Shown here: one piece after another, positions 131-41,977 of the stretch
Numbering within the stretch: position 1 is the first letter of the stretch
How the letters are laid out: every line of letters begins with the position of its first letter
DNA from: Ophelia neglecta
Lineage: Eukaryota
Assembly: GCA_965285935.1 (NCBI GenBank)
Contig: CBDIWN010000008.1
Location: 372,001-436,000 of the forward strand
Length of the DNA: 64,000 bases
Direction: 5' to 3'
The notes under the pieces: generated by a model
What the model saw: only the letters and a program-made list of their open reading frames with translations
Told to the model about the DNA's origin: nothing
Databases searched by the model: none
Program-made: the position numbers and the translations under genes

Positions 131-3100
131 AGGCCCTGATATTCTTAAAGCGATCCCTAGCTATGTTTTGTTTCTGCTTGGCCACGTCACATGAACTCAG
201 TTCTCCATTAGGCACGTCCTAAAACAGCAGATTAAGTAATTAATGGAAAAAAGCATGAAAAGAAAGATGAAAACAGAAGGACAAACATCCGTATGATAAA
301 TGAGAGAACACAAATCATATATCATAGCATCGATGCAAAATTAGGTAGCTGGAAAGAACCAATATGTTTTTTAATTCAGACCATCCAACTTTAAGATATC
401 ACACTCGCTGAATGTCTTAAAATGAAGGTTAAGAATATTGGAACATTATTTTATTTTAGTTTCAAATATTGCCCAGTAATTAATAAAGATCTATTTTCGT
501 GGCTAAGCTTGGTTTCTTTTCTGCCGCTAACATATATATAACAAATGACCAGTTATTGAAACCCGCAGTGTATATACAATGAATGTTTTGGGTAATAGTG
601 CGTATGCATGAAACATTTGTCCTTCATTACGCATGTGTGACCCAATGAGTCAATGCCACAACAGTGGTAGTCTAAAAACTGCAGTGGGATAAGACACCAA
701 GATATGAAAGCTTACATGGTGGATCAACCGATGTCATGAACTGTTTGAAGTTTAATTACCAGATAAAAACATTAATAGATACATCAATACCAAACGATAC
801 ACGTAAAGGACGCATAATTTACTCAATGTTTTAATTGGAAACTAAAAGGAGCATAACTCCTGGCCGTTGACAATGGTTGCCTAGATTGAGGGCGCGGTTT
901 TCATTTTCAAAATGCTACTTACTTCAAATTCCTTTTTCAAACCATCCTTAGTGTATTTCCGTGCCCCAATATATACTTCTAGATCATCTTCTTTGACGCA
1001 AGTTCCTTCTTCAAGACGTTTTGTAGCCGGGAAGTCATAGTATATCGTATTAGGGTTCTCATCTACGTTACCTCCAAAGCATGGATTGTCTACTTCCTCC
1101 ACAACTTTCGTTTCGGCGAGTTCATTATCAGGTCCTTTGGAATGGTAAAAAAGAACATTAGTCGCATACTGTCCATAGCACCTGACATGCTTTCTAAAAA
1201 TGACACTATACAGCGAAGCGAGTGTTAACATAAATTGATTTCATATGAAAAAACGAGAGTAGGTACCCGGCACACAAACAATATCATTTATCAAGAAAAG
1301 TCAATTAATTTGGCCCGATACAATCAGGAACCGAAAGCCATAGGCCTGGAATTACTTACCGGAAGGCCTTCTAAATGACGAATAGCTTCTTCCCTTTGGA
1401 GGTATCTCCTCCATTTTAGCATTAGCATTATCTTTCGCTTTCGTGCGTCGTTTCCTATTATGAATTTTCAAACACACCGTTTTGATTGGGTAATGTAAAT
1501 AGCGCTCGTAAGGGTTTTTATTACTCATTAGTGATTACGAAGCACTCTCAGTGTCGATGCTTTCTAACATCATTATGGGATATAATGCGTCTGAGAAACA
1601 ACGTACGGGGTGATAATTTCTTAATTCACCAACCTGAGAAAAACGACAAGAATTACCACCAGGATGGCTATAGTCAGGAACGCTGCTATTGATCCGGTAA
1701 TAGGTCCGACCAGGCTTAACGAAGCTGGGGGATCGACACTAGGTTCTGAAGGATTGCACAATTACGTGAAATGGTGATTGGTTAAGCAGCTGTAATCATG
1801 TTGTTTGCATCTGAAGCACAATGCATAGGTAGTATAAACATCGGCATATAAAGGCAATGTCAACTGCTTTGCGGCACACGAATTCAACGGTTACAAGTTA
1901 ATAAAAACTTCAGTTGTTGTAGTAAATATTATTTGTGACGACAACAAATATGAAATTACATGTGAAAAGGCAATATTATCGACATTTTTTTTATATTGAC
2001 AACAAATAGTTGAGTTTAAAACTGAATTTCAATTCAAAACCTTGTTCCTGTGTGGCTAAAGTAGTAGCGAAGACAGTCGTGTTTTTGAGAGAGTCTTCTT
2101 TTATTCCAGTCAATTGCCGATAAATCTTTAATATGATCCGGTATGTAGAATTGACGGCCAGATTTGTCAATGTCTTGTCATATTGCATAGCAATATTATC
2201 TTCGTTGATTTCTATTGTAAGCGATTCAATATCTGCCCCATTTGCCTCTGATACGGTGATTTTGTAGCCAAATACAGCCGATGTATATAATGGAATAGCT
2301 TTCACGTGTGTCCATTCAATGGTTATCCTGTCAGTTTGAACATTGGTAATGCTGACCTTGTTTATGTCCGGATACTCAACATAGGCTGTTCATATAAAAA
2401 AAGCAATAAGATCATTTTGTTTTCATTAATACATAAACATTACTGTGATTACTTTTATTAGATATATTGATCAAAATTATGTGCAATAAAACTGATTTTA
2501 CATACCTACAGACTGATTACAATAATCTCCAGCATACCATGTATCGTATGGTATCAGCTGACAACCGTGACTACATGCTCCACTGTACTGATGACAAGAC
2601 GTTATGTTATCTATAGTCGCACAGTGAAAGCCACATATGTGATCGCAGGTTATCCCATAAAAACCACTGTGACAGACGCACGTCCCGCTATACCTGTCAC
2701 ACACAGGGTTACCATGCTCACCAAGACACCGATTATTACAGGTTTTATTGCAGTATTCGCCATAAGAACCGCCCTGACACCCATGGGTACAAATCCCATT
2801 CCACTGGTCGCAAGATCCAGAGACTAATTGGTTGAGCGGCTTACAGCCAGAACTGCACTCTGTTTTACAAAATGCTCCCCACCTGGCCCCAAGACAGCCC
2901 TTAGAGCATGTTCCGTTGTTTCTCACACAAACCGATGTCCCATTAACACCATTACAGTGTTCACTGCAGGTTTTATCACATGTCTTTAAGTAGAAACCGT
3001 TTCGACAACCATTATTACAATCTCCTGTTTCTCTGTGACAATCGGGGGACCCATTGACACGATGACAACCATTGCTACATCTGTTCTGACACTGGTCTCC

Positions 3101-6100
3101 AAAGTAAGGGTCCTGACAGCCACTCGTGCAACGTCCATCAGTAACAGAACATGACCGAGAATTAGGCTCCTGACCAATAAGGCAATTCGCACTACATTGG
3201 CTGTTACAATTGATACCGAAATGGTTTATGTCACATTCTGTAATGTAGATTTTAGTCTATACGTGAAGGTTTGTTACGGTTCACCTTGAAACTAGATGTA
3301 ACTGCTCAGACATTGTGTGTTATGTTATCTTCAGTGAATAGTGGCATGATTTGTTAAAGGTTAAAACAGTAACGGGCCTACCTTGGCAGTCCGGGTACTT
3401 TGGGTAGTTCTTGTCGCATATACCGCAGCCAATCATGGGATCGCAAGACTGGCATCGATTTCTGTCACACACTAGAATAACAGGGGAATAGTTAACACAC
3501 ATAAATAGTGACCTGTTGGGCCATACATTTTAACACAACTTTCATAAATCCCGATTAATCGCTTTAACTCTTAATTGTCTTCCCGTGCAAGCCTAAGATC
3601 CAAGTAATTACAGTGGGTTGACGTCAAGTTCAGGAGTGAGTCTGTATTTGTTTATCACCATCTATAATCTGACTATTAATATATTAAGTTAGGGCATTAA
3701 TTGCAATAGTGGCAACAAGGTGTGGGTGCGTTGGTAAATGTATCCCTTATGCAGCAACTATCTATTCAAAATGGCCACAGTCCAATTCAGGAACATACAT
3801 TCAAGGATGACAATGAGTGCGGGTTTTAACATACCAATAGGTTTGTATCCGTGAACTATCACCTGACACTGGGCAAAGAACTGGACTTGATACCCGCCTG
3901 CATTTCTGATAATGGTGACGTATCTGCCGCTGAGGGGTGAGTCACAATATATTGTGTCGCTTCCTGCTTTTGGAACGACTCCTTTATAATTCTTACAGAG
4001 ACTTGTTAAATCACCGTCTGTCTCGGAACCAACTCCAAGGCGAAAATTACCGGTACGACCTGTGAAAAGGTATTCCTGGATACAAATACATTGTCTCCAA
4101 TGACACATTGTCCTCAGAGCGACTCTTGCAGTAACATTGATTCATGTATTGTACAGACGAATATGGGGGTAACTAATAACTAATTAAGAATCAACAAATG
4201 GCGTTTTGCAAAAGGCATGTGTTCATTATCTCAAGTTTGTGTTTTTAAGTAGCTCACAATGAATATAATTCTGCTATTTCGTAAAACTAAACCTGTTCTC
4301 GCAGAAAATATTCACAGGCCTAGTTTGCATTTGCCTTCAATCCCTGTATTAAATGGGAACTCGAATTCATGTGACATCTATTCGTTTTAATGCTAAAATA
4401 TATTAGATATGTAAGTAGCAATACTGGTACTGGTGGTCTATCAAATGCATACACATGAAGTACAAGTTGGAATTCTTTTTTTTTTGCCCATGAGAACAGA
4501 ATGGGAAGGACGAAAACAATTATTAGTAATGATGTGATTAATGCTACAATCATGCGTGGATGTTTCAGGTAAATGTTTTACATTTGTCTCTATCAGTCGT
4601 TTTTCATTTTCTTACTGTAAGATGGAGAATGCTGTCTGTTTAAGATGGTGACACTAACAACTGTGTAGATGTCCTCTAGATCGACGTACCACCAGGCTCT
4701 CTTCCCAGATCCAGCATCAGGATGTGCACAATTAGCTATCGATGTAAAGATTTTACCATCGACGGCCAGATCAGCGGCGAAATTATAAAATTGTCCACTT
4801 TGATATGCCGGCCTTCCCTTCGCTATATTACCTGTTTATACAAAATACTGATAAAACAGTCTGGTCTATTATGCTGTATTTAATCATAGAATAACTTATT
4901 TAGTAAACCACAAGGGCGAAAAGAACGGAAACTACAATTTACCGGCAAATGGATAAAACGATCCTCATAATCAAAGGATAACACAAAACAAGAAATTTAA
5001 AAGCATCATATTGAACCCGATGCATACTATAGAAACATTTCTCTGGTAGGGCATGAATATCTATTTGCATTTCACTCCGGGTCGGACTCCTGAAGAGAAG
5101 GGAAGAGGTTGAGGCATATTGGTTCAGCTAGGGATTGGAAAAAGTGCAGGATGCATGCAAACATTGCTAAACACGTGTAGACCTACCCTCTACCTGCATT
5201 CCTCCCATGGCAATATTATTTGTTCTTTTCAACATTGTCAGGGGCGTTCTGATATTTCATAATATAATAATTATATATTGCATAAAGAAATTGATTATAT
5301 TTTGACTGTTCATGTAAAATGTACGTCATATTATTAAAATGAGACTTATGGAGTGCTTATACCTACACAAATAAGGACTTGAAAGTTAGATAGTCACAGC
5401 GATAGTGTGCCTCATGTGTCTGTTTATTGTTAAAAAGTTTCAGGAAATGATGCAATGGTTAAATGAAACTTTGATAACTATACATTATAACACTTTCAAA
5501 GATACTCTATTTTGACAGTTTTAAAATAAAAATAAACAGAATTTTTTACCGAGTTTACACCCAGGCCCGTCTCTCCGTATGATGGCAGGGTCATCCCATT
5601 CACATTCACCTCCATTGATACAATCTCCTGTCGTCTGATCACAACCCTTGGTACAGTGACAGGGAAATACACAGCCAGCAGTACTCCCAAACCTACACAG
5701 ACCTGAGGGAAAAAGTTCCTGTTGTTAGCTGAAAATATCCGAGGGCACTAACTTGTTTCATCTTTTATTTAATATCTACACTGGAACACTCTGTCAGCCG
5801 GCTGTTCTTCCCAACGGCCCGGATTATGTGAATCAGTTCAATCATACATAAAAAAATATATGATGCAATAGATGCCATTAGATTCTACTACCATGAGCTA
5901 TTTCTCCACCCGAGAAATAATCTCCGTCCGACTCACACTTCATATCAGCCTCCGCAGACGCAATTCATTCCATTTTCGGATAACTTGGATAATAACGTTT
6001 GATCAGTACAAACTTTTTTTCTTCTCATATTCCATTTCCATGCCCACACAAGGGTGTGGGTGGTAATAAGCAGTCCCGTGCCCCTTGTACGGTAAACATC

Positions 6101-6819
6101 CTAATGGTAATACATGGCATGTTTTAATGTGAGCAGCATTGTGACCTTTCATAATTCCCGATAGCTTTATTATATTTTTAAATACAAACGCGTCTTTGAA
6201 TTCTCACTTGTGAGAAGTGACACCTATGCAAAGCTTTCCCCAAAAGCTGCCCCCCCCCCAAAAAAAAAAAGAAAGCGCACCACGCACCTCCCAGGAGCCG
6301 TTTCCTATTTTTGGAAACATCCGCCCCTGGACAGGATTCACGTCTACAACACACCACACGATATTCATATGAATGTGTGCCTTAAGATTCAAAGATCGGT
6401 GAATAGAAAATTTTATATCTATTTCAATGTAAACATTCCGCTTCCAATATGTTATCAGAAGCACTGGCGGGGTACCGAAAGAATAAGGCCCAGATAATAA
6501 TGGTGGGCATGAAATTTGTCAAGGTTTGTGGGACTTTCTGACGTGAAGTGGGTCGTCTTTAGTTATGTCACGATTTTGGTTGTAACTTGTGAAAATATAT
6601 AGTTGACACCAACTGATTTTGATGCGTACTACAAAGTATTCATGACCAAAAAATCATACGTGTAAATCGAATGTTTTACTTAATTAATACTGCCTCGGAC
6701 AACAACAAGGAGATCAAATAATAACAATAAAATAACATCTACTAACCTGTCTGAGAGGTAACTCTTGTAAGAAAAACATTGGAACTGACTAGAAAACAAA
6801 TGTAAATGGTAGGAGACAT
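131..6819 (-). CDS. Gene A: receptor-type protein tyrosine phosphatase with F-type lectin, EGF-like repeats and FN3-like ectodomain (3'-partial; PTP region continues beyond position 1)
   Basis: Hand-built GT-AG exons with consistent phases: 6819-6747 (signal peptide MSPTIYICFLVSSNVFLTRVTSQT), 5702-5550 (EGF-like), 4831-4616 and 4059-3835 (F-type lectin, NIAKGRPAYQS..AVDG..CAHP..AWWYVDL..GRYVTI), 3471-3382, 3237-2506 (6 EGF-like repeats), 2385-2041 (FN3-like), 1745-1634 (TM GPITGSIAAFLTIAILVVILVVFL), 1454-1360, 1134-923, 218-131 (PTP D1 start, AKQKQNIARDRFKNIRA). Exon-for-exon homologous to gene C. Confidence 0.9.
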
Positions 6820-8230: not shown

Positions 8231-8476
8231 CTTATTGGATGAGGGGTGGGGCCTTATCCTAATTGGATGGGGGGGGGGCTTATCCTAATTGAATGGGGGT
8301 GGGGCCTTATCCTAATCGGATGAGGGGTTGGGCCTTATCCTTATTGGATGGGGGGGGGGGCTTATCATAATTGGATGGGGGGGGGGGCTTATCCTAATTG
8401 GATGGGGGGGGCTTATCCTCATTGGATGGGGGGGGGGCTTATCCTAATTGGATGGGGGGGGGGCTTATCCTAATTA
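8231..8476. repeat. G-rich minisatellite, about 9-10 units of CTTATCCTAATTGGAT plus G(9-11)
   Basis: Directly visible tandem units of about 25-28 bp with variable G-run length. Confidence 0.95.
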
Positions 8477-12356: not shown

Positions 12357-15300
12357 TTAATTCTTGGCGCCCTCTTGCTGGTCTATATCCTCATAATCAT
12401 TATTTGTATTTAGTTGTTCGATCATTGGATTTCCATCCTCAGTCAGATTAGCTGTAAAACGTAATAAAACATTCCTAAATCCACACTTCATACTTTCATG
12501 AATCAAAGACATGTACACAAAACAATTTTCAAATCAAAATCTAATGACAATGCCCATATTGCAATATTAAGAACCGCCTGTATATGCTTATACTTTATGG
12601 ATATCTGCAACACATGTTCAGCCCATATTACAAATCACCTTTAATACGACAGGAAAAAGTTGTTTGCCGCTATAATTATGAATTATAATTATTAGTGGTA
12701 ACAGGCCATTTCACCTACACATGTAATTCTCACATTGTAACACTATTATATTACGCTATGGTATTAACAAAGTGTGGTATTTCCCAAATGTCGCTTTCAT
12801 TATGAGTTCACAGTGCGTGTAAAATATGTGTTTATTGGTCAAACAACGATGCGCAGTAAATAGGAGAAGAAAAAAAAACTATTATAAAACCAAAGCTTTT
12901 TTTCTGACTCTCACCATAGGGGGAAGGTTGCGGGGATATTTTCTCATATATGTTACAGTCGGATAATTCAATTTCTTGTGTGCCGTGAACCTGGTTGTCA
13001 TTTTGTTGTGAACATTCGTTTGTTAATTGGGTCACCTTTCGTACCCTGCAAAAATGAAAACAACATACTTCCATATTCATTAACATTTAATGTCATCCAA
13101 CACAGTCAATACTACATGCTTATGTGAATATATCTACCAGATTGGGCCTAGAGAAAGTACGTAAACTATTTTCTTTAAACATTTCGAATGGTGGTTTTTA
13201 TTGAAAATAACAAGAAAGCATCTATTTTAGACATCACTTACTTGACAATTAGACAACCACTGATGGTGGCAACAGTGGCAATTACTGCAACAACCGCTAT
13301 AACAATTCCTGCCAATGCGCCCGATGATAGGGATGCATTTTGCCCTTGTCAAATAAATATGCTAAATTGGAATATATGGTAGCTGATATCATACAAGCGC
13401 GGGACTATTCTGCTCTAGTAAACCCTACGTTGTACGCTACAAAGGGGTCTTTGTCATTTGTCTATGGCTACATTTAAAATAATGATTGTGTCTATTAAGT
13501 AACTACACTTTAGACATCACTATCTAGACACAATTTAATGTATAGTCTTTATTGTCAATAAGGGAATTGCCGACGTTTCTTCGACATTTGCAACAAACAT
13601 TATTAGTTTAACATTAAATTCAATAACCTTGATTTTGCGCAGCCAAAGTAGTGGCAAAGACTGTCGCAGGGTTGCGGGAGTCTTCTTTTGTTCCATTCAA
13701 TTGTCGATAAATGTTTAATACAATCCGATATGTGGAATTGGCCAATAGACCTGTTAAAGTTTGACTATATTTCATGGAAGTATTATCTTCTCTGACTGCC
13801 ATTCTAAACGCTTTATCATTTTTCCCATTTCCGTCCGAGGCAGTGATTTTATACCCAAATATAGCCGCTGTATTTAATGGAATAGCTTTCACGTGTGTCC
13901 ATTCAATGGTTATCCGGTCAGTTTGAACATTGGTAATGCTGACCTTGTTTATGTCCTGATACTCAACATAGGCTGTTCAAATAAAAAAGCAATAAGATAA
14001 TATTGCTTACATTAATACATAAGCATAATTGTAATTACTTTTTATATAGATGAAATATTAATCAAAATTATGTCTCAGTGAAATATAACTGATTTTACTT
14101 ACCTATAGATTGATTACAATGATCTCCAGCATACCATGTATCGTACGGTGGTAGTTGACAACCGTGACTGCATGTTCCACTGTATTGGTGACAAGCCGTT
14201 ACGTTATCTACAGCCTCACAATTACTACTACATGGTTGATGGCAGGTTTTGCCATAATAACCACTGTGACAGACGCACCCTCCGCTATATCTATCACACC
14301 CAGGATTACTATGCTCACCAAGACACTGATTAATACATATTTTATTGCATAATTCGCCGTAAGAACCGTCTTTACACCCATAATTACAAATTCCACTCCA
14401 CTGGTTGCAAGATCCAGAGACTAATTGGTTGAGCGGCTTACAGCCCGAACTGCACCTTGTTTCACAAAATGCTCCCCACCTGGCCCCCAGACAGCCCTTA
14501 GAGCATATTCCATTGTTCCTTGCACAAACAGATGTCCCATTAACACCATTACAGTATTCACTGCAGGTTTCGTTACATGTGTTTGAGTAGTAACCGTTTC
14601 GACAACTATTCGTGCAATCGCCTGTTTCTCTCTGACAAACTTTGGTACCATTGACATGATGACAACCATTGCTACATTTGTTATGACACTGGTATCCAAA
14701 GAAAGGGTCCTGACAGCCACTCGTGCAACGCCCATCAGTGACAGAACATGATCGAGAATTGGACTCCTGATCAATAAGGCAATTGGCAGTACATTGGTTG
14801 TTACAGTTTAAACCAAAATGGTTTTTGTCACATTCTGTAACGTAGATTATAGTCAGTAAGTGAAAGTTTGTAATGGTTTACCGGGAAACTGGATGTTATT
14901 GCTAAGACATTGTGTATTATATAATCTCCAGTGAAAAGTAACATGATTTGTTTAGTCTTAGACACTAATGTGCCTACCTTGGCAGTCCGGGTACTTTGGG
15001 TAGTTCTTGGGGCATTTATTACAGCCAATAACGGGATCGCACGACTGACATCGGGTTGTATCACAAACTAGAATGACAGGTGGATAGTTAGCAAAAATAA
15101 AAAGTGATGTATTGGACCTTATCTTTAAACAAAACTTTCATATATCCCAATTCATCGCATTGACTCTAATTTTTTTCCTGTGCAAGCCTAAGGTCGAAGT
15201 AATTCCAGTGGGTGACATCAAGTTCAGGCGTGAGTTTGCATTTGTTTATCACCATCTATTATCTGACTATTTATATATTAAGTTAGGGCATTACTTTTAA

Positions 15301-20712: not shown

Positions 20713-21064
20713 TATCGAATTGCACGTTCACACACCTGCGTGAGTGTGTTTATTGTGAACACTATGCCAGATAGAAGTGACTTACAGGTATGCCTACATT
20801 CAATACTGACATTTGTAATGATATTAATTTCCTGCTTTCCGAGCGGTCGCCTGAAAGTAAATACACCAGTCTAAACCTTGTTAAACAAACAATCTTTATG
20901 GCTGAAGGATTACGTGTTTGCAGCCATGTAATATATTTTGAGACATGTAATATATTGAAGTGGAAGTCCCGTGGTTTGTATTTCGAACGCTTTATTACAA
21001 TATTAATTGAATCGGATGGTATTTACACATGACGGGGATGATACTCATATTCATAAGATTAATA

Positions 21065-21242
21065 CAGTGAAACCTGCCCTAAAAAACACCTCTATAATCA
21101 GACCAACTGCCAATTCAGACCACTTATATGAGGCCTGCTATGTATAATTTCAATTCTAAATAACCTGTCTAAACAGACCACCTTCAAAATGAGACCAGCA
21201 TGTTCCAGTCCCTTCGGTGGTCTTTATTCACAGGTTTCACTG
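21065..21242. mobile_element. MITE of Tc1/mariner-pogo type
   Basis: TIR CAGTGAAACCTG...CAGGTTTCACTG flanked by TA on both sides. The paralogous empty site (GAATATAAGGAAATA) lies at about 7281 upstream of gene A. Confidence 0.9.
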
Positions 21243-21434
21243 TATAAGGAAATAGTCTGTTAGTAATGAAAACAAACATCATGTAAAATTAAAATGCAAA
21301 TAAGGAGACTAAAAGACGTTCTCCATGCGGTTAACTTAAAGGAATGCAAATCAGGGATATACACTGGGACATGAACTATATTATAGTATCTTACCCAGTG
21401 AGGGACGGGATGATAAAGATGATACAGACATATA

Positions 21435-28632: not shown

Positions 28633-31600
28633 CTATAAATCATGTCATGATTGTATCGTACAATGGAAATACAACCGGATGACTTTTTAAATTTGCCAAA
28701 TTGTTATTTTAGTGTTTTTATAGATAACATAAATCGCATTCTACTTTTACACTTTTTCATACATTAAACATTATCATATTGAATAATGTGAATGTAAATT
28801 TAGAAAATGATATAAATACGATTAAGTAAATACAATTATTAATAATTTGCATAATAATTCTATCTCCAAGTACTAATTTATTGACATTTTTTGTCAATTA
28901 ATCAATGATGAAATTTTGCAGCAAAAACGCAAATGAATGGAATGTATTTATATGAATACAAAACCCACCTTGAACTGTTCTTCAATGGGAACCTCATTGG
29001 AATATTCATTTCCGTCTATCAGTTGTGTATACCTCTCAGGATACAGGTTACACGGAATGGCGGTCTCTCCTTGCTGGTATGCGTCTAGCAGTGCATCGTA
29101 AATGAATTCATATTGTGACTGAAAGCAGGAGAAGAGTAAGCCTATGCTACCAATTGCCGGATAACAGCAGTCAGTGATATGTAGCTAGGTTCAAAATTTG
29201 ATATCGAATTTATAACACTGAACAGCATAATTAATAGATCAATTACTACTATCTACATTTATAATATTGTTATTTTTTGCCCACTTTCTATAATAAATGA
29301 GGTCAGATAAACACGAAAAATCTTTCTAGACAGAACATTCTAATTGCTTCAACACATGGCCTTTGGATCTACACTAATGGTTGCTGACATGAAGCATGAA
29401 ACATTGGCTCATGTTAAAGCCTAGTATCCTCTCAACTGGACTATTATCACAGAAAAAAGTCTTACCAAGGATTGAACCATGTCCATGCGTTCATTTCTGA
29501 GTTGTGTCACACATCTGAAGACATCTACCTTTCCTTCTCCTTTCATTTGGTCCAGAAGATAGTCCAGAGCAATCAATGTCCCTGTGCGTCCAATTCCCGC
29601 ACTAGAGAGAAAGTTACATATGTTTATTCTATGTATTGTACATAAATGAATACCCTTGAATTGTTCTTAATCAGACTTAGTGTTTGCTTTTAATCGGTTA
29701 TTTGACCTGCAGTGGACGATGATTGGTCCTGTTCCCTCCACGTCAAATGATCTCAGTTTTCTTCTGAAGGCCAAGAGAGGAAACGGGTGGTCTGGGGTCA
29801 GTTTGTCTGGCCAGGAAAGGAATTGGAAGTGCTTTACTGTCCTTTGTTCATTCTACAAGAGGAAAACATTATTATTCTTATTTCAAATTTCATTTGCGTT
29901 GATTGTTTCTAAGATTAATGAGTGGCGGCAATATATTGAATTAATAGTTAAACACGGAGGTTGGACAAGGTGACCACACTCTATGACGATTCATGTGTTA
30001 GAGAATCTCAAATGATATCATATTCAAGCTACAGTGTATTACTACTGAGCACTGCCCTCTTAAGTTGGCACTAATCTAATGAATGTGTAACGGGAATCCG
30101 GTGGACTGCATGTATAAGCTAAACTAAAGAAAGGCTTAAATTGAATATTTTGATTTATTTGGGACAGATGGTATGCAAAATTTGTTGAGGCAAGCCACAG
30201 CTGTTCGTTGTTCGTAGAATTGGCGTTCATTGTGTGACATATGCTTTTATAGATAAGTGAAAATGTGAACACAAAAAAGCAAAGACTAAAGAAATTGACG
30301 CACAAACCAACCTCTTTTTAGACATATACTGAGCAGATATGCTTTAAAGCCAAGCCCACAATCATGTCTAGTACTGATCAAATTTGTATACGTTGCAAAA
30401 CAACACGCTATTTACATTATGGTATAAAGTGGAAATGTTGATCACATATTTCTGAAGCTTCCTTTGCCTTCCTCGCTACCTCGTAGTATTAAGATTCGAG
30501 CAGTACGGGACATTTCACATTATTCTAAAGTATCTTTGTTCCATTTGCATATTCCCCATTTAATTAAGCGAAGTACTTTTAAAACCTACCCCCTTTTGAA
30601 TGGTGATGATTGTTAGATTATGGTCGGCATATGACTCACAGGCCGTGGTAATCACTGTAATATCACCATAGGTTACACTCTCTCCAACTGGCTCGGGCCA
30701 ATACTGTGCACACTTTGTCTGTTATTAATAAAACGAATTGGGATGGTCAATGTTTCTGTTGACACGCCTAAACGGGATTTCATACCCCAATACCAAAATG
30801 ATGCAATATATCGAAAAACATTTCATGCTGTTTCACACTGACAAACCTTTGTGAGTTCTTTAATTCGAGTTGCCATAACAACACGATTTGACTGTAACTG
30901 CCAGACCATAGACCATAACGCGCAGGCTGTTTCAGGCTTTGGTCCTGGAAAAAAATTAATTCAAACGTAGTGTTTGATACTCGTTAGGAGTATTATTCTG
31001 ATTTTGTTGGTGTTTTGTTTTTTTCTAATTATAAATAAAAATAGTTGCATAGGTTTTAATATGTTTATTCTTAATATATTGTTTTAAAATGTTATTATAA
31101 ATTATATTTAATTATCATAACTATTTTCAATCTTTATCTTCGTGAAATTGTGAACCTGAACTGTGACAACTAATCTAATTGCTAGATAACTGCATCAGAA
31201 CTTTATTTACTTACCTTGTGTGGCTACGTAATGGTTTGACTTGTCAGGATAACCCTGGAATGTATGCATCATTTTGATTGTATGGTTGAAAACGGCTTTA
31301 AGATTTGCGTTATTTAAAATATCGGAAAGCAAATTTGACTCAGTTAAGGTGCCTGTAAACCCCTACAAATGTATTGCAGTATAAGATTGGTAAAAATGGC
31401 AATGTCACTTATATTATATGGATAGATATATAGTTTATAGATCCTTAGATGACAGGCGTAATCCAAATTTCTACCCCATTATCACTTTTATTTAGTATTA
31501 AATGGCTTGATTACGGCAACATTTGATTGTTGACATCACATATGGTAATCACGTGACCAATGTTGTCATACATACTAATTAGACTCCTCCCCCTCTCTTA

Positions 31601-34600
31601 ACTGAATCTAGCAGGCCTGAAGACGTTACTAAGAAAGATGTATACAATCATCTGATACAGATTCGAACTAGTCCCCATAAATATTCGGCTTGCTCAATAT
31701 CTGTACTTTTGGATACTAGTTATATTATCAGTAAATGGCATTTTCAATGTCACTAAGGTGCTTTAACTTAAAGATCAATTTAAAAATGTGTATGACAGGG
31801 TAGAATTATGTATTGCTGTTGTTCTCGATGAACGCAATATTTACAACTTTGTACCGGTGGGGTTTTACAGGGAGCTTAAACCATGTTCCATATAACGGTA
31901 ATCGTGTTTACCGTAATGAAGCTGGCATTGATGTAGTCCGAGTTATCTACAGTAGCCTCCAAAACAACTCGAGAATAGTCATCTGTAGAAACATAACTCG
32001 TGATATAATGACTAGTGGTACTAAGCGAGGTCATTTAACGTCGAAATAGTAAAATATGCCTCGTGAAATGTATAGTAAAATATGGCTTGTGAAATGGATA
32101 GTGAAAAATGACTCGTGAAATGTGAAATGTATAGTGAAATTTTCATATTGGATTCTTTTTACACCATACATCGTCACTTTACGTTCTGTTCACTATTTAA
32201 TTGTCAAACAAGTACTTTTAAATGGTAGTTGACGGGTAAAAACACATACAGGCTCTGATGTTCTTAAATCGATTCCTATCGATGTTGTTTGGCTGCTTGG
32301 CCACGTCACACGGGCTCAGTTCTCCTTGAGGCAGGTCCTAAAAAACGGACATTACTTAAATCAATCTTAAAATTTAAAATAATAGGACTAAATCAAACAA
32401 GACAAATAAACAAATAGGGAGATAGACAAAGAGTTATTCCTTCACAAATAGTTCAATACTTTATCATATAAAATGACTAGGTAGTAGATGTCAATCGCGA
32501 AAAGCTTGGTGTGCGGCCTTATAAAAGACAAATTCCCACATTTTATATATTATATTCGGGATGGTAACAATGGTTTCAAATAACACATCCGATTTAAGAT
32601 ATCATCAACGCTGTGTTGGTTTTCCAATGATTGGAAATCACAATGATAGATTCGTTTTTTATTGAAAATAAAAACACGTTGTATGTCGGCAAATCCCGCT
32701 TGATTTTTGTTGTCAACATGTATACAACAAATGCCAATATATGTTATCAGCGGGGTACATAAAATGTAGGTAGTGGTAATTGGTAATGATTTAGAAACTT
32801 GATTTCTTTGGAAACATGTCCAAGCTTTACCTTACAGTTTTATCACACCTACAGTTTTTAGTTTAAAACTGAGCAGAGTAGCCAGTGAACTCGAGCCATT
32901 TTATATGCCGATTCAAAAGAAAAGAAATTATATCATAACAGCAGGTAACTTACACCAAATTCTTTCCTCAGACCATCCTTTGTGTATTTCCGAGCCCCAA
33001 TATAAGCTTCCAGGTCTTCCTCTTTAACACAAGTTCCCTCATCAAGTTTTTTTGTAGCCGGGAAGTCGTAATATATCGTATGGGGGTTGTCCTCATCTAA
33101 GGTACCCTCAAAGCTTGGGTTGCCTATTTCTTTCACAAATTGCGTGTCGGCGAGGTCTTTGGCACGTCCTATGCAATGGAAAAACAAAAAAAAAAACATC
33201 TTGTTGAAACGTGTCTAAAGCATATATAGCAATTTGTTGAGAATAAAGCAACATTTAATTTTACATACAAAGACGTGCGTTACTTACGGGAAGGTTTTTT
33301 AACAGACGCATAACTTGGCATTTCTTCAATTTTAGAACCAACATTGTCCTGCGATTGCTTGCGCCATTTCCTTCTACGATTGTAAAAAGAAGTGTTGAAG
33401 AAGAGTTATAAAATTGGTAGCGATGTTATTGCGTAATCCTTTTCAAGAAGCGCTGTCAATTATGTGGCAAACTAAAACCATAATGTGAAATAATGTGCCT
33501 ACAACGTAGGGCCTACGAGATGATTATTTTTCAATAGTTACACACTTGAGAAAAATTACAACAAGAATTACTACAAGGACAGCTATCAGCAGGACGGCCA
33601 CGACAGATCCGGTAATAGGACCGACCAGTCCTGGCAGGCCTCTCGCACTGACGCTTGGGTCTGGATGATTGCACAGATATGCGAAATTGACGTTGGTCAA
33701 AAAGTCGTAAATATATTGTTATCATTCACTGCACTTTAATGGGGAATTAAACTTACACAGGGGATAGTTTGGCTTGCCATAAATATATTGAAATTGCAGG
33801 AGAAGATATGCGTTTGACGCAACTAAATACGACACCACTTTTTCCTGACTTATTTTCGATATTTGTGACAAAATAATTATAAGTTCAATGTAATTTTAGT
33901 TTTATTAACCTTGCTCCTGTGCAGCCAAAGTAGTAGCTAAGACTGTCGTGGCTTTGCGGGAGTCTTCCTCTTTTATCCCAGGCAATTGTCGATAGATGTT
34001 TACTGTGATCCAATACGTAGAATTCGCAGCAAGATTTGGCAATGTTTGGTTATATTTCATTAAGACATTATCTTCTCTGATTGCTATCATAAACGGTTCA
34101 ACCTCTGTCTTATTTGCATCGAACGCAGTGATTTTGTAGCCATATACAGCCGATGTATTCAATGGAATAGCTTTAACATGCGGCCATTCAATGGTTACGC
34201 TGTCAGTTTGCAACTTGGTAATGATAACTTTGTTTCCCTCAGGATACTCCACGTACCCTGTTCCCAAGAAAAAACAAAACGGTTGTAAAGTGTTTTCATT
34301 GATAAACAAACACGGAATAGATACTGTTTTCATTAATGTGTTTCCGTTAATTATAAAAAAACGGAATAGATACACGGTAATAAAAGCAACATCATTCATC
34401 GAGAATAGTGCGTTAAATCTGTCAGAAATCATCAGGAACCACAAGCCGAGGGCCTTTGTAGGTAGCACGGTGATTAGTTTTCATTCTGCTATAAATGTTT
34501 GTTTCTTAAATAATGCAATAAGTGGAATAAAACTGATTGTGCTTACCTATAGACTGGTTACAATGATCTCCAGCATACCATGTATCGTACGGTGGAAGCT

Positions 34601-37600
34601 GACAACCGTGACTGCATGATCCACTGTATTGATGACAAGTCGTTATTTTATCTACAGCCTCACAGTAACTACTACACGGTTGATCGCAGGTTTTGCCATA
34701 ATAACCACTGTGACATGTGCAGGACCCAGAATACCTTTCACACACGGGGTAACCTTGCTCACCAGAACACTGGCATGTTTTATTGCAGTATTCGCCATAA
34801 GAACCGTCCTTGCACCCATGATTACAAATTCCGCTAAACTGGTTACAAGACCCAGAGGCTGTCTTGTCGACAGGCTTACAACCTGAACCGCACTATGTTT
34901 CACAAAATCCACCGAACCTGCTATCCTTACAGCCCTGAGAGCATGTTCCGTTGTCTCGGGCACATATAGGTTTTCCATTTATACCATCACAGTAGTCACT
35001 GCAGGGTAAGGTACATGAATTACCGTAGTAACCATTTTGACAACCGTTGTTACAATGTCCTGTATCTCTGTGACAAGTGTTGGAGTCTGTGATAACAAGA
35101 CATTTATGGTTACATTGGCTCTGACACTGGTCTCCAAAGTATTGATCCAGACAACCACTCGTGCATCGTCCATCAGCGACAGAACATATCTGATTAACAC
35201 AATTTGCGCTGCAGGTTGAGGAACACATCGTACCATAATAACCACTTTTACAACCATTCTGACAATCTCCTGTTTCTCTGTTACAAGTGATGGAGCCTGA
35301 GATAACACTACATCCATTGCTGCAGCTCAGATGACACGTGACCCCGTAGTATTGGGCTCTACACCCCTGAGTACAACTACCAGAGTCTCGGTTACAGACT
35401 TCTAAGCTGTCAATACGGTGGCAGTTAGTACTGCACCAACTAGTACATGTATTTCCCCAATATCCTGGAATACACCCATTATTACAACGGCCATCAGAGA
35501 GAGAACATTGCCGAGAGTTGGAACCCTGAACAAAGAGGCAATGCGCACTACATTGGAAATTACAGTTGATACCGTAATGGTCTTTGTCACATTCTGTAAG
35601 GTACATCATATGTCATAATTCAAGATTATAACGATTATTATTATTTAGCATGGTACCGGATGTTACCACTATGGCACTGCCTAACATATAATGAAAGTTA
35701 ACACGGTAAGCCTACCTTGATATTGTCTAAAAGATAATGTACGTTAAAATGGTAAGCCTACCTCAAACTGTCTAACATATAATGAACGTTAACACGGTAC
35801 ACCTACCTTTACACTCTGGGTACTTAGAGTTCTGGGTACATGTAGAGCAGCCAATTAAAGGATCGCATGACTCACATCGGCTACTCTGACACACTGGAAT
35901 AACAGGTGGGTGTTAAAAAGCAACTGCAAGCTTCAGGCAAACATCAAGGTAAATTTAGAGGGTTGATATAATTTTCCGTAGTGCGTTTATATCTATCTAA
36001 TATCAAATGTAAACAGCCCACCGATAAAATTTAAAATTCGTAATTGGCGACAATAACCAAAAGGTAGATTCTGCTCATCGAAATTTACTCTTTGTGCATG
36101 AACTAAATATTTAAAATAAACACTTTCTATTAAGTTATATATTCGAGATGTGAGGGTTTGACATACCAATAGGTTTATAACCATGAACAATCACCTCACA
36201 CAAAGCAAGAAATTGAGGTTCAACAGTGGCCTCGCGCGTTCTGATAATGGTAACGTATCTGCCGCTGAGAGACGGGTTACATTGTATGGTTACATTTCCT
36301 CCCTGAGGAACGACTCCCGTAAACACTTTACAGGGAATTGTAAAGTCGCCCTTAGTTTGGTGACCAACTCCAAGACGAAAATTACCGGTACGCTCTGTGA
36401 AAATAAATAACTGGCCTAAAATAACAAAATTGAACGCCAGGAAAACCAAAGAAATAGTGATCTCGGCCAATAATAACCCCATATCACAATGTCAGGATAG
36501 AAGATAGACATTTTCACTGTAACTTGCTGGGAGTATAGCTCTCTAGCGATCTGCCATTGGAGACCCACTTATCTTATATTATGACCCGAGCTTCTCTCCC
36601 CATTCATACAGTTTAAATCAGCCCAAAAAAAGTCCTGTCACCTCAGGATTTATTGGTAGAATATAACTCAATTGTGCGTCCAGTATTGGAATTTGCCTGC
36701 CAGGTGTGTCACATAGGCCTTACCGGGAGCTAAGTAGTGACTTTAAATCTGTGCATAATCGAGCGCAATGAACAAGGCGCTCTCAGTGGAATGGGGGTCA
36801 GAATGGAAAATTTGTGCTGATAGTAATGGCAGATGACAGTATCTAAACTGATGCAGAGACAAAGGGTAGTATCGACTAAAACTTAATATTAACACTAACC
36901 TAAACACCTGAGATTTCATATTAGTGGGTTGCATATTATAAATTAATTTGTATAAAGGTTGAGCACGCTCTCTTAACGGGTCAGCGGTTTTACACTTTGC
37001 ATGTCTTTAAACAGTTCAAATAAGAATTAAATGATGTACTGAATTGCACATTTTCAATGCAGAGAATAATGTTATAGTAGTGATGTTTACACAATATATG
37101 ACGTATGATTTGAGACACAACTTATTTATACAATAAAATCTCATAGTCAAAAAAGTTAATAAATATACACCTGTTATGTTGCCAAAAAATACTTCTTTCA
37201 ATTTATTTTATTTGTTTCTATTTTTGTATTATGTTCATAACAATTCAAACCACATTATTTTTTTTCTGATTATATTTCTTGGATTATTTCATCCGATGCT
37301 CCGGGTGAACAAAATCTGCCCTCTTGTGTAAAATATTACACATTACACCCGTTTTCTGTCCATGTAATATATCAAACTCTATGGCGTGCGCATAGTAACC
37401 AGGGTAAGTCTACTAGTCGTCCACTTACCATGCGCCGTAGAATCACCTCTGTTGTAGATCGTGACACTGGTCACTGTGTAGGTATCTTGTAGATCTACGT
37501 ACCACCACGCTCTCCTACCACCCCCTGCATCAGGGTGTGCACACTGATTAATATCTGTGCTGACAATACCATCCACTGCCAGACTTGCTACTAGATAATT

Positions 37601-40600
37601 CCAGTGACCACTTTGATAAGCTGGCTTCCCCCTTGCTATATTACCTAAACACAATATTATTAAAATGACGAGGGAGGTAATTACTAAAAGAAAACATAGT
37701 TATAGCATAGTTATTTTCTTCTTAATGGTGAACCCGTCCATAACGAAGAAGTTATGGCAAACTTCTTTAGACAAAAAGATCCCTATATGTAGTATGGAAA
37801 CAACTTATTATATTACTAAAGCTTTCTAAAAGTATGTGTTTGTCAGATCTCTTGATATGGATATATGGGAAAAAACAAAATGTTTCATAAGTGGTAATCA
37901 TAGGTAATATATCGGTGTCTGTGATAGTCTTAGGTTTTTAAACAAATCATGTATAAACGACGTTTGTCATTCATGAATAGTAATATATTACTGTTTTCGC
38001 ACCAGTTTTGATTTCGGCCAGGACCAAAATGGCTCTAACAGATTAATTTAAAATATAATGCATTTTTCCAATAACGGTGAACTGGTCATTTGGGCTTCTG
38101 TCTTACGGCATGAATGGCAAAGAATCAATTTTAAAAAAGTAAACAACAAAAAACTGAAAATGTAATTAGAACATATATTTAACATAAGGAATGTTGGCTA
38201 TCAGCCGTGTCTGATATTTGCACTAAAATGTAAAAGCAGGGTCGGTGTTTTCCCAAGACTTGTTCCAGACAATTTTACAATAAGACCCATAAACAATTTG
38301 CCTTTTTTCTTAGTTGATAACTATTTTCTACAGTACTAAGTTTTAAGAAAAAAATTGCCCATATTTTGAAAGGTCACTGAGAGTATTGGTCATATATTAT
38401 ACGACTTCCATCCGGCTTAGGGATCATTAGAGGGTGTTTTATTTTTATTTTTGCTGTCTGAAGTTTTGATAGAATAGATCGAATATATAAATGGTGTTTG
38501 TTCCGTCCCTAATGGGTGTGTACATTTTTACTAATAATTGCTATCTGAAGATTCAATTGAAAAGACTGATTACATAAATGGTGTTTGTTCGTTCAGAGTT
38601 TCACATACACACGTGGTAATATTTCCTAGTTTGGATATATGAAATATGTTTTGGATATTGAGTCCATAGAAAATGCATTTCATAATTCTAAATGGAAAAT
38701 AATCATGTTTTTATTAACACTGTTTTCTGTTGGTAAGCGTTGTTAGATATGACTTAAGGGATAACATTAATTTGATTAGCATATTGTATAATACTTCCAA
38801 AGATGATATATTTACTATAGACAAAAATAAGAAAGGTTACCAATTTTACACCCTGGTCCAGTTCTTAGCATGGTGGCAGGATCATCCCAACGACACTGTC
38901 CTCCATTCAAACAAGCTCCTGTTAGTTTGTTACAGCCATCAGTACACAGACAGGGAAATACACAGTCCGCAGTATGACCAAATCTACAAAGACCTGATGG
39001 AGGCAATGCTGAACATGATGCCAATGGATGCAATGAAAACGTTTAGACCTCGTTTAGATGAACACATAATTAAAGCCCTTAAACTTTGCACGGAAACTCT
39101 TGTCTTTGCAAATATAAATAAAACATAGTGACACAATGAAATTCTTATAGAACATTAGCTAAAATAGTATTATAAACTCATGCCGTCAGACCCTGGCAGG
39201 AGAGGGAGCGAGAAGCTTTCATATACTTTATAACGGCTTTCCTATCAATTTTAGCTCAAGAGAACAGAGAATCCGATTCAAGTTCAAATATTCACTATTA
39301 CATTGCAAAGTAGTCATATATTTGATAAATATGCGGGTATATGGTATGCGGATCTTTACCTTCAGTTAAAATTAAAGCCAAATTAGCCCATGCACACAGC
39401 TGTGCTCGAAATGCTCTTGCAGCATATATGGGTAAATCACTAAGTTAGCATAAAATAAATAGTTGCTGTCATTGAGGCGGCAATACGTAATTAATAGTGT
39501 CCATTCTCGCTATGATACCGAACCCGTTTGGCTGAGTAAATATATTCTTACTCATAAAGCCTTTCTCATAAACTCTTACTCATACATACAGAACCATATA
39601 CTCTTACTCATATACTCTCATCTCTTATACTTTTATATCTTACTCATATCGAAATTATATCTAAGTCGTTAATGGATGAAGTATTGCTTGCATTGTTATA
39701 ACCTAATGTTCCATTTTAAAGGAAATGGACAAGCTATCCCATGCCTCCCTAACCAACATTTGCCGTTCTCCTACCGGAACCCGCTCCGTCTGCCTTCATT
39801 CATGGCCCATTCTCCAGCCGGGCTTCATCGCTCAATTAACAACACATATTGTTCAGTATTCACCCTCACCAGTCACCAGGTTTTGTTCAGTACACATAAT
39901 TGAACCCTTGAAGGGAAAACATATGTTTTGTGAACACTTCCGGACAAGTATTCCCAAGTATAACAACTTGTATGCCTGATACATAGGGCCTATGCTTTGG
40001 CATGCATTCTGCCTAAATAAGCCGTCAAATGTATTCAAGAGGGATTTATTTTACTCGAGAAATGATCCTTTCTCTTTTCATTTACAAGGATCCATAATTG
40101 GCAACAATAACTTTCCATGAATTGTGAAGAGATAAATATCGCTATTTCTTTAAATGAGGCACGCAAATTTTAGTTATCTTTCATCTGTGATAAGACACAC
40201 CAAAACTCCTAAGCGGCTCTTTGGCGCATTTTTCTCAAGCTTATGTTCGGTCTCTATTGATCCTATCTCCAACATTTGAAAGTAAAAATTACCATACTAT
40301 ACTTAGTCACAAGTATGGAAGGAAATGGTGCAAATCCGCAGGGTAGCAGCTAACTCCCCCCCCCCCCCCCCGCCCCCTCCTCACGGTTTTTAACATCCCA
40401 ACGTTTACACAGCGCTATGTACGCACTTTTATGTTCAAAGGTGAACTTGAAATTTTCTTCCCATATTCTGGTGACTGTTGTGCCAAATTTACATTTGATT
40501 AGAATTTAATATATTTTCTCCAATATCCATTGAAATATTGAAATCAAAGAAAAAGTGCGCGAGGTACTTGGCAGTAATATGCAAAGGCTACGGGCAGTAT

Positions 40601-41977
40601 CGACTAAAAATTAATATTTACACTAACCTCAAACACGTGGAATTTCATATATGTAATTATAATAGTGGGTTGCATATTATAGATTAAGTTGTATGAAGTT
40701 TGAGCACGCTCTCTTAACGGGTCAGCGGTGTTGCACTAAAGTCTGTTTCTTCTCGAAAGTAAGCCATCGCGCGAAAGCGGGAGTCACTGCCCTTTGCACT
40801 TGCACGACAGAAATGCAATGCTCGCGTATGTCTAGCCTTACCGCACCCAAGAACAAGATTGAGACAAATGTTTCAAACTAGACCAGATATTCATAGATAT
40901 ATATTCTTTAGAACAATAAAAATGGAGTCATGAATACTGAAGCTTGACAAATTTGCCTTTCAAAGTATTAAGCTATTTAGTCGTTGACCTACTTCCAATA
41001 CAAAGCGATGATCATTGACTGTGTATTATAGGATGGTAATGGTTTTTGCACATAGCGTGTATGCACATACTTTATGTATAGAATTCACCACTTTGCAAAC
41101 AATCAGTCATGCATTTGACTAAGATTCCATGGACGGATTTAAAAGTTGGCGAAGCTCATTCTTGCACCAAGAGACCATTTTAAGCCGTGAAATATATAAC
41201 CTTACTGGCAGAGGTCACTAATATTTTTACACCGCTTTATTACATTTACTTTATAATGGTAATATTATACCTAGCTTATGGGAGGTCAAACTTTAGCCAT
41301 GCCAAATCCCGGACAGTTGCCCCCCCCCCCCCTCTCCCTACTTCGTTTCTCACTATTGAAGGCTTCTGCCCCGTGTAACCCTCGAGGGCCGCAACTATAC
41401 CTTTCCTTTATTCTCAATTTAATTTGTACATTTAGATTTTGCGTGTGATGAATATGATTTTTCCTCAAAATAATTGTTAAGGTAAACTCTTAGCGATCTT
41501 TGGGTAGTCGCAAGGGTACTGGAGGTCAGGAATTATAAATTGCGGAGCAAGCAAATGATTCAGAACCATTCACCTCGACTGTTGCGAAGGGTATGGTCTG
41601 TAATAAGTGTTACGATTTTGGTCAAGATTTGAAGATGTATCGTCGGCTCCGACGCGGCCACATATTTCTGATACCTTTAGGTATCATGCATCACAAAAAT
41701 TCAACATAAAATATAACCGTTAAGCAACTCACCCTTTTATTATTTTTACATATGACAAGAGAGTAGCTCATTTAATATCGTCTTGTATTGTGTCGCAAAC
41801 AACACATCCACTCATTTGAATAATAAATCATGCCGCTGCCAACAACAACAATATTGTGTAATTGTAATACACATAATTATAGTTAAGATACATTTACTAA
41901 CCTGGTTGGCCAACAACTCTAGTTGTAAGAAAGACAGTGGAACCGACTAGCAAACACACATTAATCAGAGGAGCCAT
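26721..41977 (-). CDS. Gene C: tandem-domain receptor-type protein tyrosine phosphatase with F-type lectin/EGF/FN3 ectodomain; 25 exons, about 1411 codons, one in-frame TAG at 34895-34893
   Basis: Exons 41977-41902 (signal peptide), 38993-38841, 37644-37429, 36394-36167, 35893-35807, 35593-34547 (9 EGF-like repeats), 34257-33910, 33660-33546 (TM), 33373-33288, 33168-32954, 32337-32250, 31982-31912 (DYINAS), 31254-31215, 30944-30847, 30718-30590 (KCAQYWP), 29852-29707 (WPD, IIVHC), 29601-29466 (SAGIGRTG), 29118-28969, 28632-28533, 28417-28344, 28102-27968, 27847-27710, 27511-27363, 27147-27012, 26795-26721 (TAG). All GT-AG with consistent phases. Confidence 0.9.
29070..32337 (-). other. PTP domain D1 of gene C, catalytic motifs intact
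   Basis: [63 protein letters not shown] and MVQSLSQYEF occur in the canonical order of classical PTP motifs. Confidence 0.9.
32049..32140. repeat. Short tandem repeat, about 26-bp unit (GTAAAATATGNCTCGTGAAATGTATA), about 3 copies
   Basis: Visible in gene C intron 11. Confidence 0.7.
36600..36770 (+). mobile_element. LINE (CR1/L2-group) ORF2 C-terminal fragment
   Basis: [29 protein letters not shown] resembles the IRPVLEYACxVW motif of these elements. Confidence 0.7.
36862..36990 (+). repeat. About 130-bp dispersed repeat, second copy at about 40591-40730
   Basis: GTATCGACTAAAA..CACTAACC..GTGGGTTGCATATTATA..TTGAGCACGCTCTCTTAACGGGTCAGCGG is present in introns 3 and 1 of gene C. Confidence 0.8.

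Follow-up and report, generated by a model that had tools for sequence, protein, structure and literature searches.

One lectin/EGF/FN3 ectodomain design on receptor phosphatase or ITAM-type tails: a candidate paired-receptor family in Ophelia neglecta

Background

Vertebrate innate immunity is marked by receptors that come in activating and inhibitory pairs, a logic whose origin is an open question. In these systems the activating arm couples a charged transmembrane (TM) residue to an adaptor bearing an ITAM (immunoreceptor tyrosine-based activation motif), and the counter-arm carries an immunoreceptor tyrosine-based inhibitory motif (ITIM) that recruits SHP-1/2. Draper carries an ITAM that recruits Shark, and furrowed of Drosophila is a membrane-bound mosaic F-type lectin. 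Signalling from an ITAM through Syk has been reported experimentally in an oyster (PMC6994640). Here we describe three genes, A, B and C, in a 64,000-nucleotide stretch of the Ophelia neglecta genome (G000:C16:372001-436000, hereafter the window, to whose positions coordinates refer unless a contig is named). They belong to a tandem family in which one lectin/EGF/fibronectin type III (FN3) ectodomain design is joined either to a receptor protein tyrosine phosphatase (PTP; P format) or to a short ITAM-type tail (I format), the same genomic signature as in vertebrates with a receptor phosphatase standing where they use an ITIM.

Results

Three tandem paralogues with two kinds of signalling end

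Comparing the six-frame open reading frames (ORFs) and the DNA of the window with themselves shows that A, B and C, all on the minus strand, are collinear paralogues. Between their exons blastp gives E-values of 1e-24 to 1e-141, which put the paralogy far beyond chance. Exon borders were set from three-way DNA alignments and three-frame reading and verified by in-script assembly of the coding sequence. Each ectodomain consists of seven exons, encoding a signal peptide, a first Cys-rich segment, two lectin exons, a second Cys-rich segment, an EGF array and an FN3 domain, with matching lengths (Table 1) and introns that are all in phase 1 with GT-AG ends, as the original prediction of three tandem paralogues with shared exon architecture had it. 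The longer EGF exon of C (1047 nt vs 732 nt in A and B) corresponds to 2-3 additional EGF units. A homologous signal-peptide exon starts all three genes, those of A and B having been located by their similarity to that of C. An ATG exon at 5878 was considered as the start of A and rejected on account of its poor donors and an ATT at the equivalent position of B.

Downstream of the FN3 exon A and C have homologous TM exons, two homologous juxtamembrane exons and a homologous first PTP exon, and both run into PTP domains as predicted. All exons of the first (D1) and second (D2) phosphatase domains of C lie in the window. The reading of A is open up to the window edge and, with the phosphatase exons of C as queries, all its D1 and D2 exons were found beyond it at C16:362001-372000, with the D1 signature and WPD loop present and exon cores free of stops. 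A looks intact in the window. C is interrupted by an in-frame TAG in its EGF exon and is otherwise intact over approximately 1,500 codons, judged by exon cores. The secreted form of C that had been suggested would be the product of this nonsense codon, more probably the sign of a null allele or of a pseudogene that is still young. B also ends as predicted, in an unrelated TM exon and a short tyrosine-motif tail: its TM and two tail exons have no similarity to A or C, its ORF of 720 aa is uninterrupted, and the 5 kb between B and A contain no PTP remnant.

Domain identities of the exons

Domain searches (Pfam, PDB sequence and Atlas) were run one exon at a time. Among solved F-type lectins the first lectin exon of C is nearest FBP32 (3CQO, 9.7e-11), Sm-hPAF (4GWI, 1.6e-8) and eel agglutinin (1K12, 1.8e-7), in agreement with the F-type lectin head originally proposed, and it also matches the pneumococcal fucolectin-related protein 2J1R (5e-3). 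The first lectin exon matches the Pfam F5_F8_type_C clan as well and the FN3 exon scores above the Pfam fn3 cut-off, gene B having both matches. The EGF array of C matches Pfam EGF_laminin and its nearest Atlas clusters are EGF_laminin/EGF_PEAR1L and mostly molluscan, which is a lead only. Pfam returned nothing for the EGF exon of B or for either Cys-rich exon and gave no EMI match on any exon, the PDB sequence search with the EGF exon of B gave no match and the Atlas search with the FN3 exon was uninformative. These matches support a family head that is probably an F-type lectin, followed by an EGF array of PEAR1/MEGF type and a real FN3 domain.

In C seven exon pieces, five from D1 and two from D2, matched Pfam Y_phosphatase (PF00102), all but one of them at or above the cut-off. 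The D1 signature HC(X)5R is read as VHC/SAGIGRTG across an exon junction, together with SWPD, in C, A, g2, g4 and g9 (cluster genes are numbered in Table 1), and no P gene lacks the signature or the WPD loop. At the D2 active site C keeps C(X)5R but A-like genes have C(X)5H. The solved chains closest to D1 are those of LAR/PTPRS, PTP-epsilon/alpha and CD45. Direct reading of the P genes shows a hydrophobic signal exon, and a TM exon of approximately 24 residues with a basic stop-transfer behind it. These features support the reading of A and C as receptor PTPs of the tandem-domain type in which the D1 signature is intact.

P and I formats are interleaved across a large family

The full exon map covers C16:200001-476000, with the rest of C16 and C7 counted from the match lists of genome searches. 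In the mapped region all family genes lie on one strand with P and I formats interleaved (Table 1), and match coordinates on the remainder of C16 and on C7 show the same alternation. The I cassette, that is the TM and tail module of B including its introns, is present in at least 25 copies on C16 and at C7:90.45-91.0 Mb, with DNA identity of 69-82% over approximately 1.05 kb and with the first tail exon (tail-1) open in every copy. Searching with the juxtamembrane exon of A yielded at least 22 close copies of the P cassette in the same regions of C16 and C7, and more than 30 further distant exons related to it (38-67% identity) in other tandem arrays (C5:16.6-19.0 Mb; C7:79, 87, 91.4-91.8, 93.5 and 96 Mb). 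As judged by these matches the receptor-phosphatase superfamily is much larger than the A/B/C cluster.

Several rearrangements were seen in the mapped region. A segmental duplication with an offset of approximately 14.9 kb (C16:201644-205988 vs 216560-220904) copies the 3' two-thirds of a P gene and gave g1 from g2. The gene g13 (C16:463880-470626) extends from the signal exon to the second Cys-rich exon, with a shortened first Cys-rich exon and no FN3, TM or tail exon detected downstream. The last exon of B and the start of its 3' untranslated region (12301-12700) have matches of 85-87% at several places outside annotated genes, and orphan fragments of the second tail exon (tail-2) and 3' untranslated region are apparently scattered across the cluster.

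Ectodomains are exchanged between the formats

In the self-comparison of the window, positions 1980-7446 of A and 13571-21422 of B are collinear at 70-87% identity, introns and 5' flank included. The collinearity extends through 600 nt of 5' flank and the proximal flanks are nearly identical. The claim that A is the closest ectodomain relative of B holds to this extent within the window, but not across the cluster, where a sliding nearest-neighbour scan against 276 kb shows B to be a mosaic. Its lectin exons are nearest A (90-91%), its 5' region is nearest g9, g7 and g3, and the 3' half of its EGF exon, together with all that follows downstream, is nearest g7, an I gene. Identity between P and I ectodomains reaches approximately 90%, and the FN3 exon exists in two versions, all I genes sharing one short I-specific terminal stretch. 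In a maximum-likelihood tree of five concatenated ectodomain exons B groups with g7 (100/97) and the I gene g5 falls inside the P genes g2 and g4 (100/98), and monophyly of the I-format ectodomains is rejected (approximately unbiased (AU) test, p=0.011). The ectodomain tree mixes the formats.

Since the ectodomain introns are all in phase 1 and the TM exons of both formats end in phase 2, unequal crossing-over and gene conversion move segments of the ectodomain from one format to the other in frame, and the hybrid g3, in which a phase-2 P-type TM exon is joined to tail-1, indicates that the formats may also be swapped one intron further down. We favour B as a gene of an established I lineage with a converted ectodomain, nearest overall to g7 and not to A. 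A partial duplicate of A with a captured tail was rejected as an origin of B on the tail consensus, the mosaic scan and the tree. Taken together the two formats are a cluster-wide interleaved system with ectodomain exchange, which provides stronger evidence for a paired architecture than A, B and C alone.

In g3 itself (C16:232001-242474) a fusion, the third type of junction in the cluster, joins a P-type TM and juxtamembrane exon to tail-1's intron and acceptor. Its phase-2 TM donor could splice in frame to tail-1 and a similar copy, L015, lies at C7:90.657 Mb.

The ITAM-type tail and the splicing of gene B

Aligned I-format tails have a variable juxtamembrane half and a near-constant distal half with four tyrosines, in NVYEKP, Y-x-N-L, NPMYEQL and YEDI. 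Each of the ten distinct complete copies that were compared keeps all four, except that B has lost one. The family ITAM is canonical (YxNL-x7-YEQL), and NPMYEQL can also be read as an NPxY overlapping a YxxL. The tail of B has 74 aa and carries YEKI-x6-YANL and later YEDI, the Tyr and the Ala-Asn-Leu of YANL straddling the last intron. In B alone the Pro after the first tyrosine is replaced by Ile, which creates the YEKI-x6-YANL spacing, so that a cytoplasmic YxxL/I-x6-8-YxxL/I pattern is found in B as well as in the family consensus. On the alignment the YEKI of B is a putative compensating change for the second ITAM tyrosine that this gene has lost.

The TM segment of B (13318-13244) contains no charged residue. 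Its exon has a strong GTAAGT donor in phase 2, following an FN3 donor in phase 1, and tail-1 is preceded by a good polypyrimidine tract and a CAG acceptor. Candidate polyadenylation signals beyond the last exon stand at 11693 and 10811. In most I copies the TM exon begins at an upstream TAG acceptor and encodes seven extra residues. In one sub-lineage a net deletion of 1 nt throws this TAG out of frame and the acceptor lies 19 nt downstream instead, as CAG in three intact copies (L019-L021) and as AAG in B, L012 and L013. In B the ancestral TAG, at approximately 13365 and 19 nt upstream of the AAG, is out of frame, and a transcript spliced there would meet a stop once 21 codons had been read. 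The family evidently does make use of AAG acceptors, since the juxtamembrane exon of all A-like phosphatase genes has one. The splice sites of the I module are conserved across the other I genes and the ten exons of B are all open, and we consider it likely that B is spliced as modelled. Contigs of three genomic short-read runs over 11001-17000 cover the introns without splice joints and confirm the assembly of 12535-13595.

Selection and the lectin fucose motif

Among the exons compared pN/pS is highest in the two lectin exons (0.77 and 0.72; FN3 0.42), and the variability of the first lectin exon is concentrated in three patches. For the I tails deep comparisons give approximately 0.4 and the values of close pairs spread about 1, with B among them or without it. 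The tail of B against its nearest relative gives approximately 0.8-1.2, a value not distinguishable from those of close type-1 pairs. The His and first Arg of the F-type fucose motif are present in A, B and C, the His being lost in g3 and g8.

Table 1 Positions of family features in the window and order of the family genes across C16:200001-476000
Feature	Position	Strand	Length (nt)	Remark
Gene A	131..6819	-		P format; in-frame splice model, running off the window
A signal peptide	6819-6747	-	73
A Cys-rich-1	5702-5550	-	153
A lectin-1	4831-4616	-	216
A lectin-2	4059-3835	-	225
A Cys-rich-2	3471-3382	-	90
A EGF array	3237-2506	-	732
A FN3	2385-2041	-	345
A TM	1745-1634	-
A juxtamembrane	1454-1360 and 1134-923	-
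A first PTP exon	218-131	-
Gene B	12357..20712	-		I format, ITAM-type tail; splice model
B 5' flank	20713..21422	-		80-88% identical to flanks of both formats; A equivalent 6820-7446
B signal peptide	20712-20640	-	73
B Cys-rich-1	18534-18382	-	153
B lectin-1	16575-16360	-	216
B lectin-2	15653-15429	-	225
B lectin-2, first full codon	15649..15651	-		CTT (Leu) vs CGT (Arg) in all ten other cluster genes
B Cys-rich-2	15067-14978	-	90
B EGF array	14834-14103	-	732
B FN3	13972-13628	-	345
B TM	13344-13242	-
B TM exon with AAG acceptor	13242..13346	-		In frame only from AAG
B tail-1	13045-12915	-
B YEKI	12948-12937	-
B YANL	12918..12444	-		Across the tail-1/tail-2 junction
B tail-2	12451-12357	-		TAA stop
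B NPM-I-EQL	12425-12411	-		Tyr-to-Ile site
B YEDI	12395-12384	-
Gene C	26895..41977	-		P format; all D1 and D2 exons in the window
C signal peptide	41977-41902	-	76
C Cys-rich-1	38993-38841	-	153
C lectin-1	37644-37429	-	216
C lectin-2	36394-36167	-	228
C Cys-rich-2	35893-35807	-	87
C EGF array	35593-34547	-	1047	About 8 units
C in-frame TAG	34893..34895	-		Codon 487, in the EGF exon; GAG in A, AGG in B
C FN3	34257-33910	-	348
C TM	33660-33546	-
C juxtamembrane	33373-33288 and 33168-32954	-
C D1 exons	~32337-28951	-		PTP borders approximate
C D2 exons	~28632-26895	-		PTP borders approximate
g1	Order 1			P; partial, recent duplicate of g2
g2	Order 2			P
g3	Order 3			Hybrid, with tail-1 after a P-type TM; FN3 has a stop
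g4	Order 4			P
g5	Order 5			I
Tail fragment only	Order 6			No format
g7 and g8	Order 7-8			Both I
g9	Order 9			P
A, B and C	Order 10-12			P, I and P (with in-frame TAG)
g13	Order 13			C-like 5' half; stop in lectin-2

Repeats within and beyond the three genes

The spacer between B and A contains a G-run-rich tandem repeat of 26-27 bp in approximately 9 copies (8226-8475), which gives a Pro-rich pseudo-ORF on the minus strand. A dispersed repeat with copies of 69-78% identity on C1, C7, C8, C9 and C12 occupies 594-915, in the intron between the first PTP and juxtamembrane exons of A, and a segment of approximately 150 bp that occurs twice in introns of C (36851-36996 and 40579-40737, 82% identical) is probably a dispersed repeat too. 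Upstream of C a direct tandem duplication of 5.3 kb (43698-48984 and 48981-54280, 99.2% identity) holds short ORFs only and no family exons, each copy bearing a minisatellite of 45 bp x 11.7 (46083-46607 and 51369-51893). A 162-bp x 1.9 repeat lies at 59715-60017 and a 23/53-bp minisatellite with long repetitive ORFs at 62144-62681.

Discussion

A possible paired-receptor logic

The explanation that in our view accounts best for the whole, and which we hold with moderate confidence, is that one lectin/EGF/FN3 ectodomain design stands on two unrelated signalling cassettes and serves a paired-receptor logic. The architecture supports this reading and the function is what we infer from it. P and I formats would probably share the cells that display them, and with the fast-evolving loops of their lectins they would bind related ligands, probably glycans. 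The I-format tails would be phosphorylated by Src-family kinases and would then recruit tandem-SH2 kinases of the Syk/Shark type, or PTB adaptors via NPxY, leading to cell activation. A P-format receptor on the same ligand would bring its phosphatase into the contact and so set or veto the I signal, the counter-arm carrying its phosphatase in cis instead of recruiting one to an ITIM.

A number of observations weigh against this reading. In B alone Ile replaces the NPMY tyrosine, with which the second tyrosine of the canonical ITAM and the NPxY are lost, and the Leu that opens its second lectin exon aligns with the second Arg of the F-type fucose triad, a change predicted to alter or abolish fucose binding by B. 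A-like genes have RxH for the canonical RxD and an additional residue in the loop, so that fucose binding is not assured. Pairwise dN/dS of the ectodomains is 0.3-0.9 (A-B 0.51), and selection on ectodomains and tails is only moderate, and the cluster contains clear pseudogenes in g3, g13, the tail fragment and the TAG of C. No RNA runs were found for the region, the only three runs being all genomic and from one sample. Outside this genome a profile of three FN3 exons searched against 1.84 billion representatives found one true relative only, a 203-aa fragment on a 1.3-kb Logan contig, the remaining twelve matches being generic multi-FN3 proteins. Finally an inhibitory P arm is an assumption because a receptor PTP can also promote Src-kinase signalling as CD45 does.

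Several of these points would also be expected if the window held mostly the debris of gene birth and death, which we regard as possible though doubtful. In that case only A would work here, C would be a young pseudogene and B would be drifting, with a soluble product or a substrate of nonsense-mediated decay if its TAG acceptor were used, and there would be no functional pair even if the wider family had two working formats. The stop in C, the further pseudogenes in the cluster, the sole loss by B of both the second ITAM tyrosine and the lectin Arg, the pN/pS of its tail and its dependence on an AAG acceptor lying 19 nt past a good but frame-shifting TAG would all fit such decay. However all ten exons of B are open with conserved GT-AG sites, its acceptor position is a CAG in three intact relatives and AAG is normal in the juxtamembrane exons of A-like genes. 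Close type-1 tail pairs are equally high in pN/pS and B is not distinctive among them, its gained Ile recreates an ITAM spacing with the first two tyrosines, and at the exon-core level C is otherwise intact.

The receptors may also act outside immunity, in gamete recognition, allorecognition or adhesion and engulfment, in the manner of oyster bindin F-lectins or of Draper/MEGF10, with the formats reflecting cell types or stages instead of a paired sensor, which we think unlikely. F-type lectins serve fertilisation as well as immunity (PMC12221842, PMC5712786), the type of EGF array together with an NPxY/YxxL tail resembles CED-1/Draper/MEGF10/PEAR1, and fast ectodomain evolution suits reproductive proteins too. 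Against this the proximal promoters shared by the formats argue for similar expression, and interleaved formats that exchange parts and activate or counteract are typical of immune or allorecognition loci in known systems.

A further alternative keeps both formats functional and takes away their opposition: the P format would prime Src-family kinases in the manner of CD45 or CD148, so that both formats promote signalling, or it would act on other substrates. Src-family kinases are switched on when CD45 or PTP-alpha takes off their inhibitory phosphate at the C terminus, and the D1 domain here is of the classical active type with LAR, PTP-alpha/epsilon and CD45 as its nearest solved structures. 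Kinetic segregation however needs the phosphatase to be excluded from the contact and a shared ectodomain would draw it in. Taken as a whole this alternative seems to us rather improbable, even though a CD45-like priming role is by itself as possible for the P arm as an inhibitory one.

That the ectodomain exons of B splice past their own tail into the TM and phosphatase exons of A, which would make B an alternative 5' module of A and no separate ITAM receptor, is very improbable. B does lie on the strand of A, 5.5 kb upstream, and as its FN3 donor and the TM acceptor of A are both in phase 1 such a join would be in frame. Against this at least 25 genes contain the I cassette as a conserved module of three exons that brings its own stop, and behind many of them no P gene follows. 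A for its part is provided with a signal exon and with a promoter-proximal flank that is conserved.

What a functional pair would mean

If the family is functional, it would show that the paired-receptor principle has evolved convergently. The receptor PTPs, for the majority of which no ligand is known, would gain a family with a predicted ligand class, and a ligand that draws a phosphatase into the same contact would provide a natural test of kinetic segregation. In addition the all-phase-1 exon structure illustrates how whole signalling cassettes can be swapped. A bolder version, which we offer tentatively and think somewhat unlikely, is that a lophotrochozoan-type marine invertebrate has a true non-Ig paired system. 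In it polymorphic or microbial glycans would be sensed by dozens of receptors with F-type lectins, every ectodomain lineage having been reissued repeatedly as an ITAM/NPxY activator and a cis-PTP inhibitor by phase-1 exon shuffling, and inhibition would require neither an ITIM nor a phosphatase of the SHP type. Were it so, activating and inhibitory logic would have been invented independently, and this would be the first such system with a receptor PTP as the ligand-matched counter-arm.

Comparison with known systems

Vertebrate paired clusters (KIR, LILR, Ly49, SIRP, Siglec and CEACAM) are likewise tandem and interleaved, with related ectodomains on alternative signalling parts, and share with this family repeated ectodomain exchange, fast birth and death and the presence of pseudogenes. 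Their ectodomains are Ig or C-type lectin whereas here they are lectin/EGF/FN3, and their tails are functionally opposed, as those of this family would be. In place of an ITIM that recruits a phosphatase the counter-arm here has a tandem phosphatase in cis, and in place of a charged TM residue with an adaptor the activating arm has an ITAM in cis, the TM segment of B being uncharged. No ITIM-tailed member was seen in the family. As it has neither an ITIM nor an adaptor-coupled activator, the family would work like a paired-receptor cluster rather than being one.

Among invertebrate receptors oyster CgIgR carries a cis-ITAM like the I format (PMC6994640), and the fester family of Botryllus comprises polymorphic receptors with activating and inhibitory motifs (PMC12582321). 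Both have Ig or other ectodomains with ITIM/ITAM pairs, and neither is known to pair an ITAM receptor with a phosphatase-tailed twin. The first lectin exon aligns with solved domains of the F-type lectins, a group to which eel agglutinin, FBP32, oyster bindin and Drosophila furrowed belong, and keeps the His and first Arg, but RxD-x4-R is altered (RxH in A-like genes, with one extra residue) and there is no Cys-Cys. The open literature searched contained no link between F-type lectins and receptor phosphatases, and two reviews of F-type lectins (PMC5712786, PMC12221842) do not mention phosphatase or ITAM partners.

With CED-1/Draper/MEGF10/PEAR1 the family shares what is probably a PEAR1L/laminin-type EGF array, a single membrane pass and, in the I format, a short tail with NPxY and YxxL/I. 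That group has an EMI domain whereas none was matched here, and an F-type lectin, FN3 and phosphatase-tailed twins in tandem arrays are added. The spacing of the ITAM is 11 in Draper, 7 in the family and 6 in B. The I format taken alone thus resembles a lectin-headed receptor of the Draper/MEGF10/PEAR1 type. The P format is, like LAR/PTPRS, PTP-alpha/epsilon and CD45, of type I with FN3 in the ectodomain, a D1 with HC(X)5R and WPD and a degenerate D2, while no known subtype of classical receptor PTP was found with an F-type lectin head or a PEAR1/MEGF-type EGF array, here present in dozens of tandem copies. As predicted from its exons the P format would be a tandem receptor PTP of the classical kind, on which a head without precedent is set.

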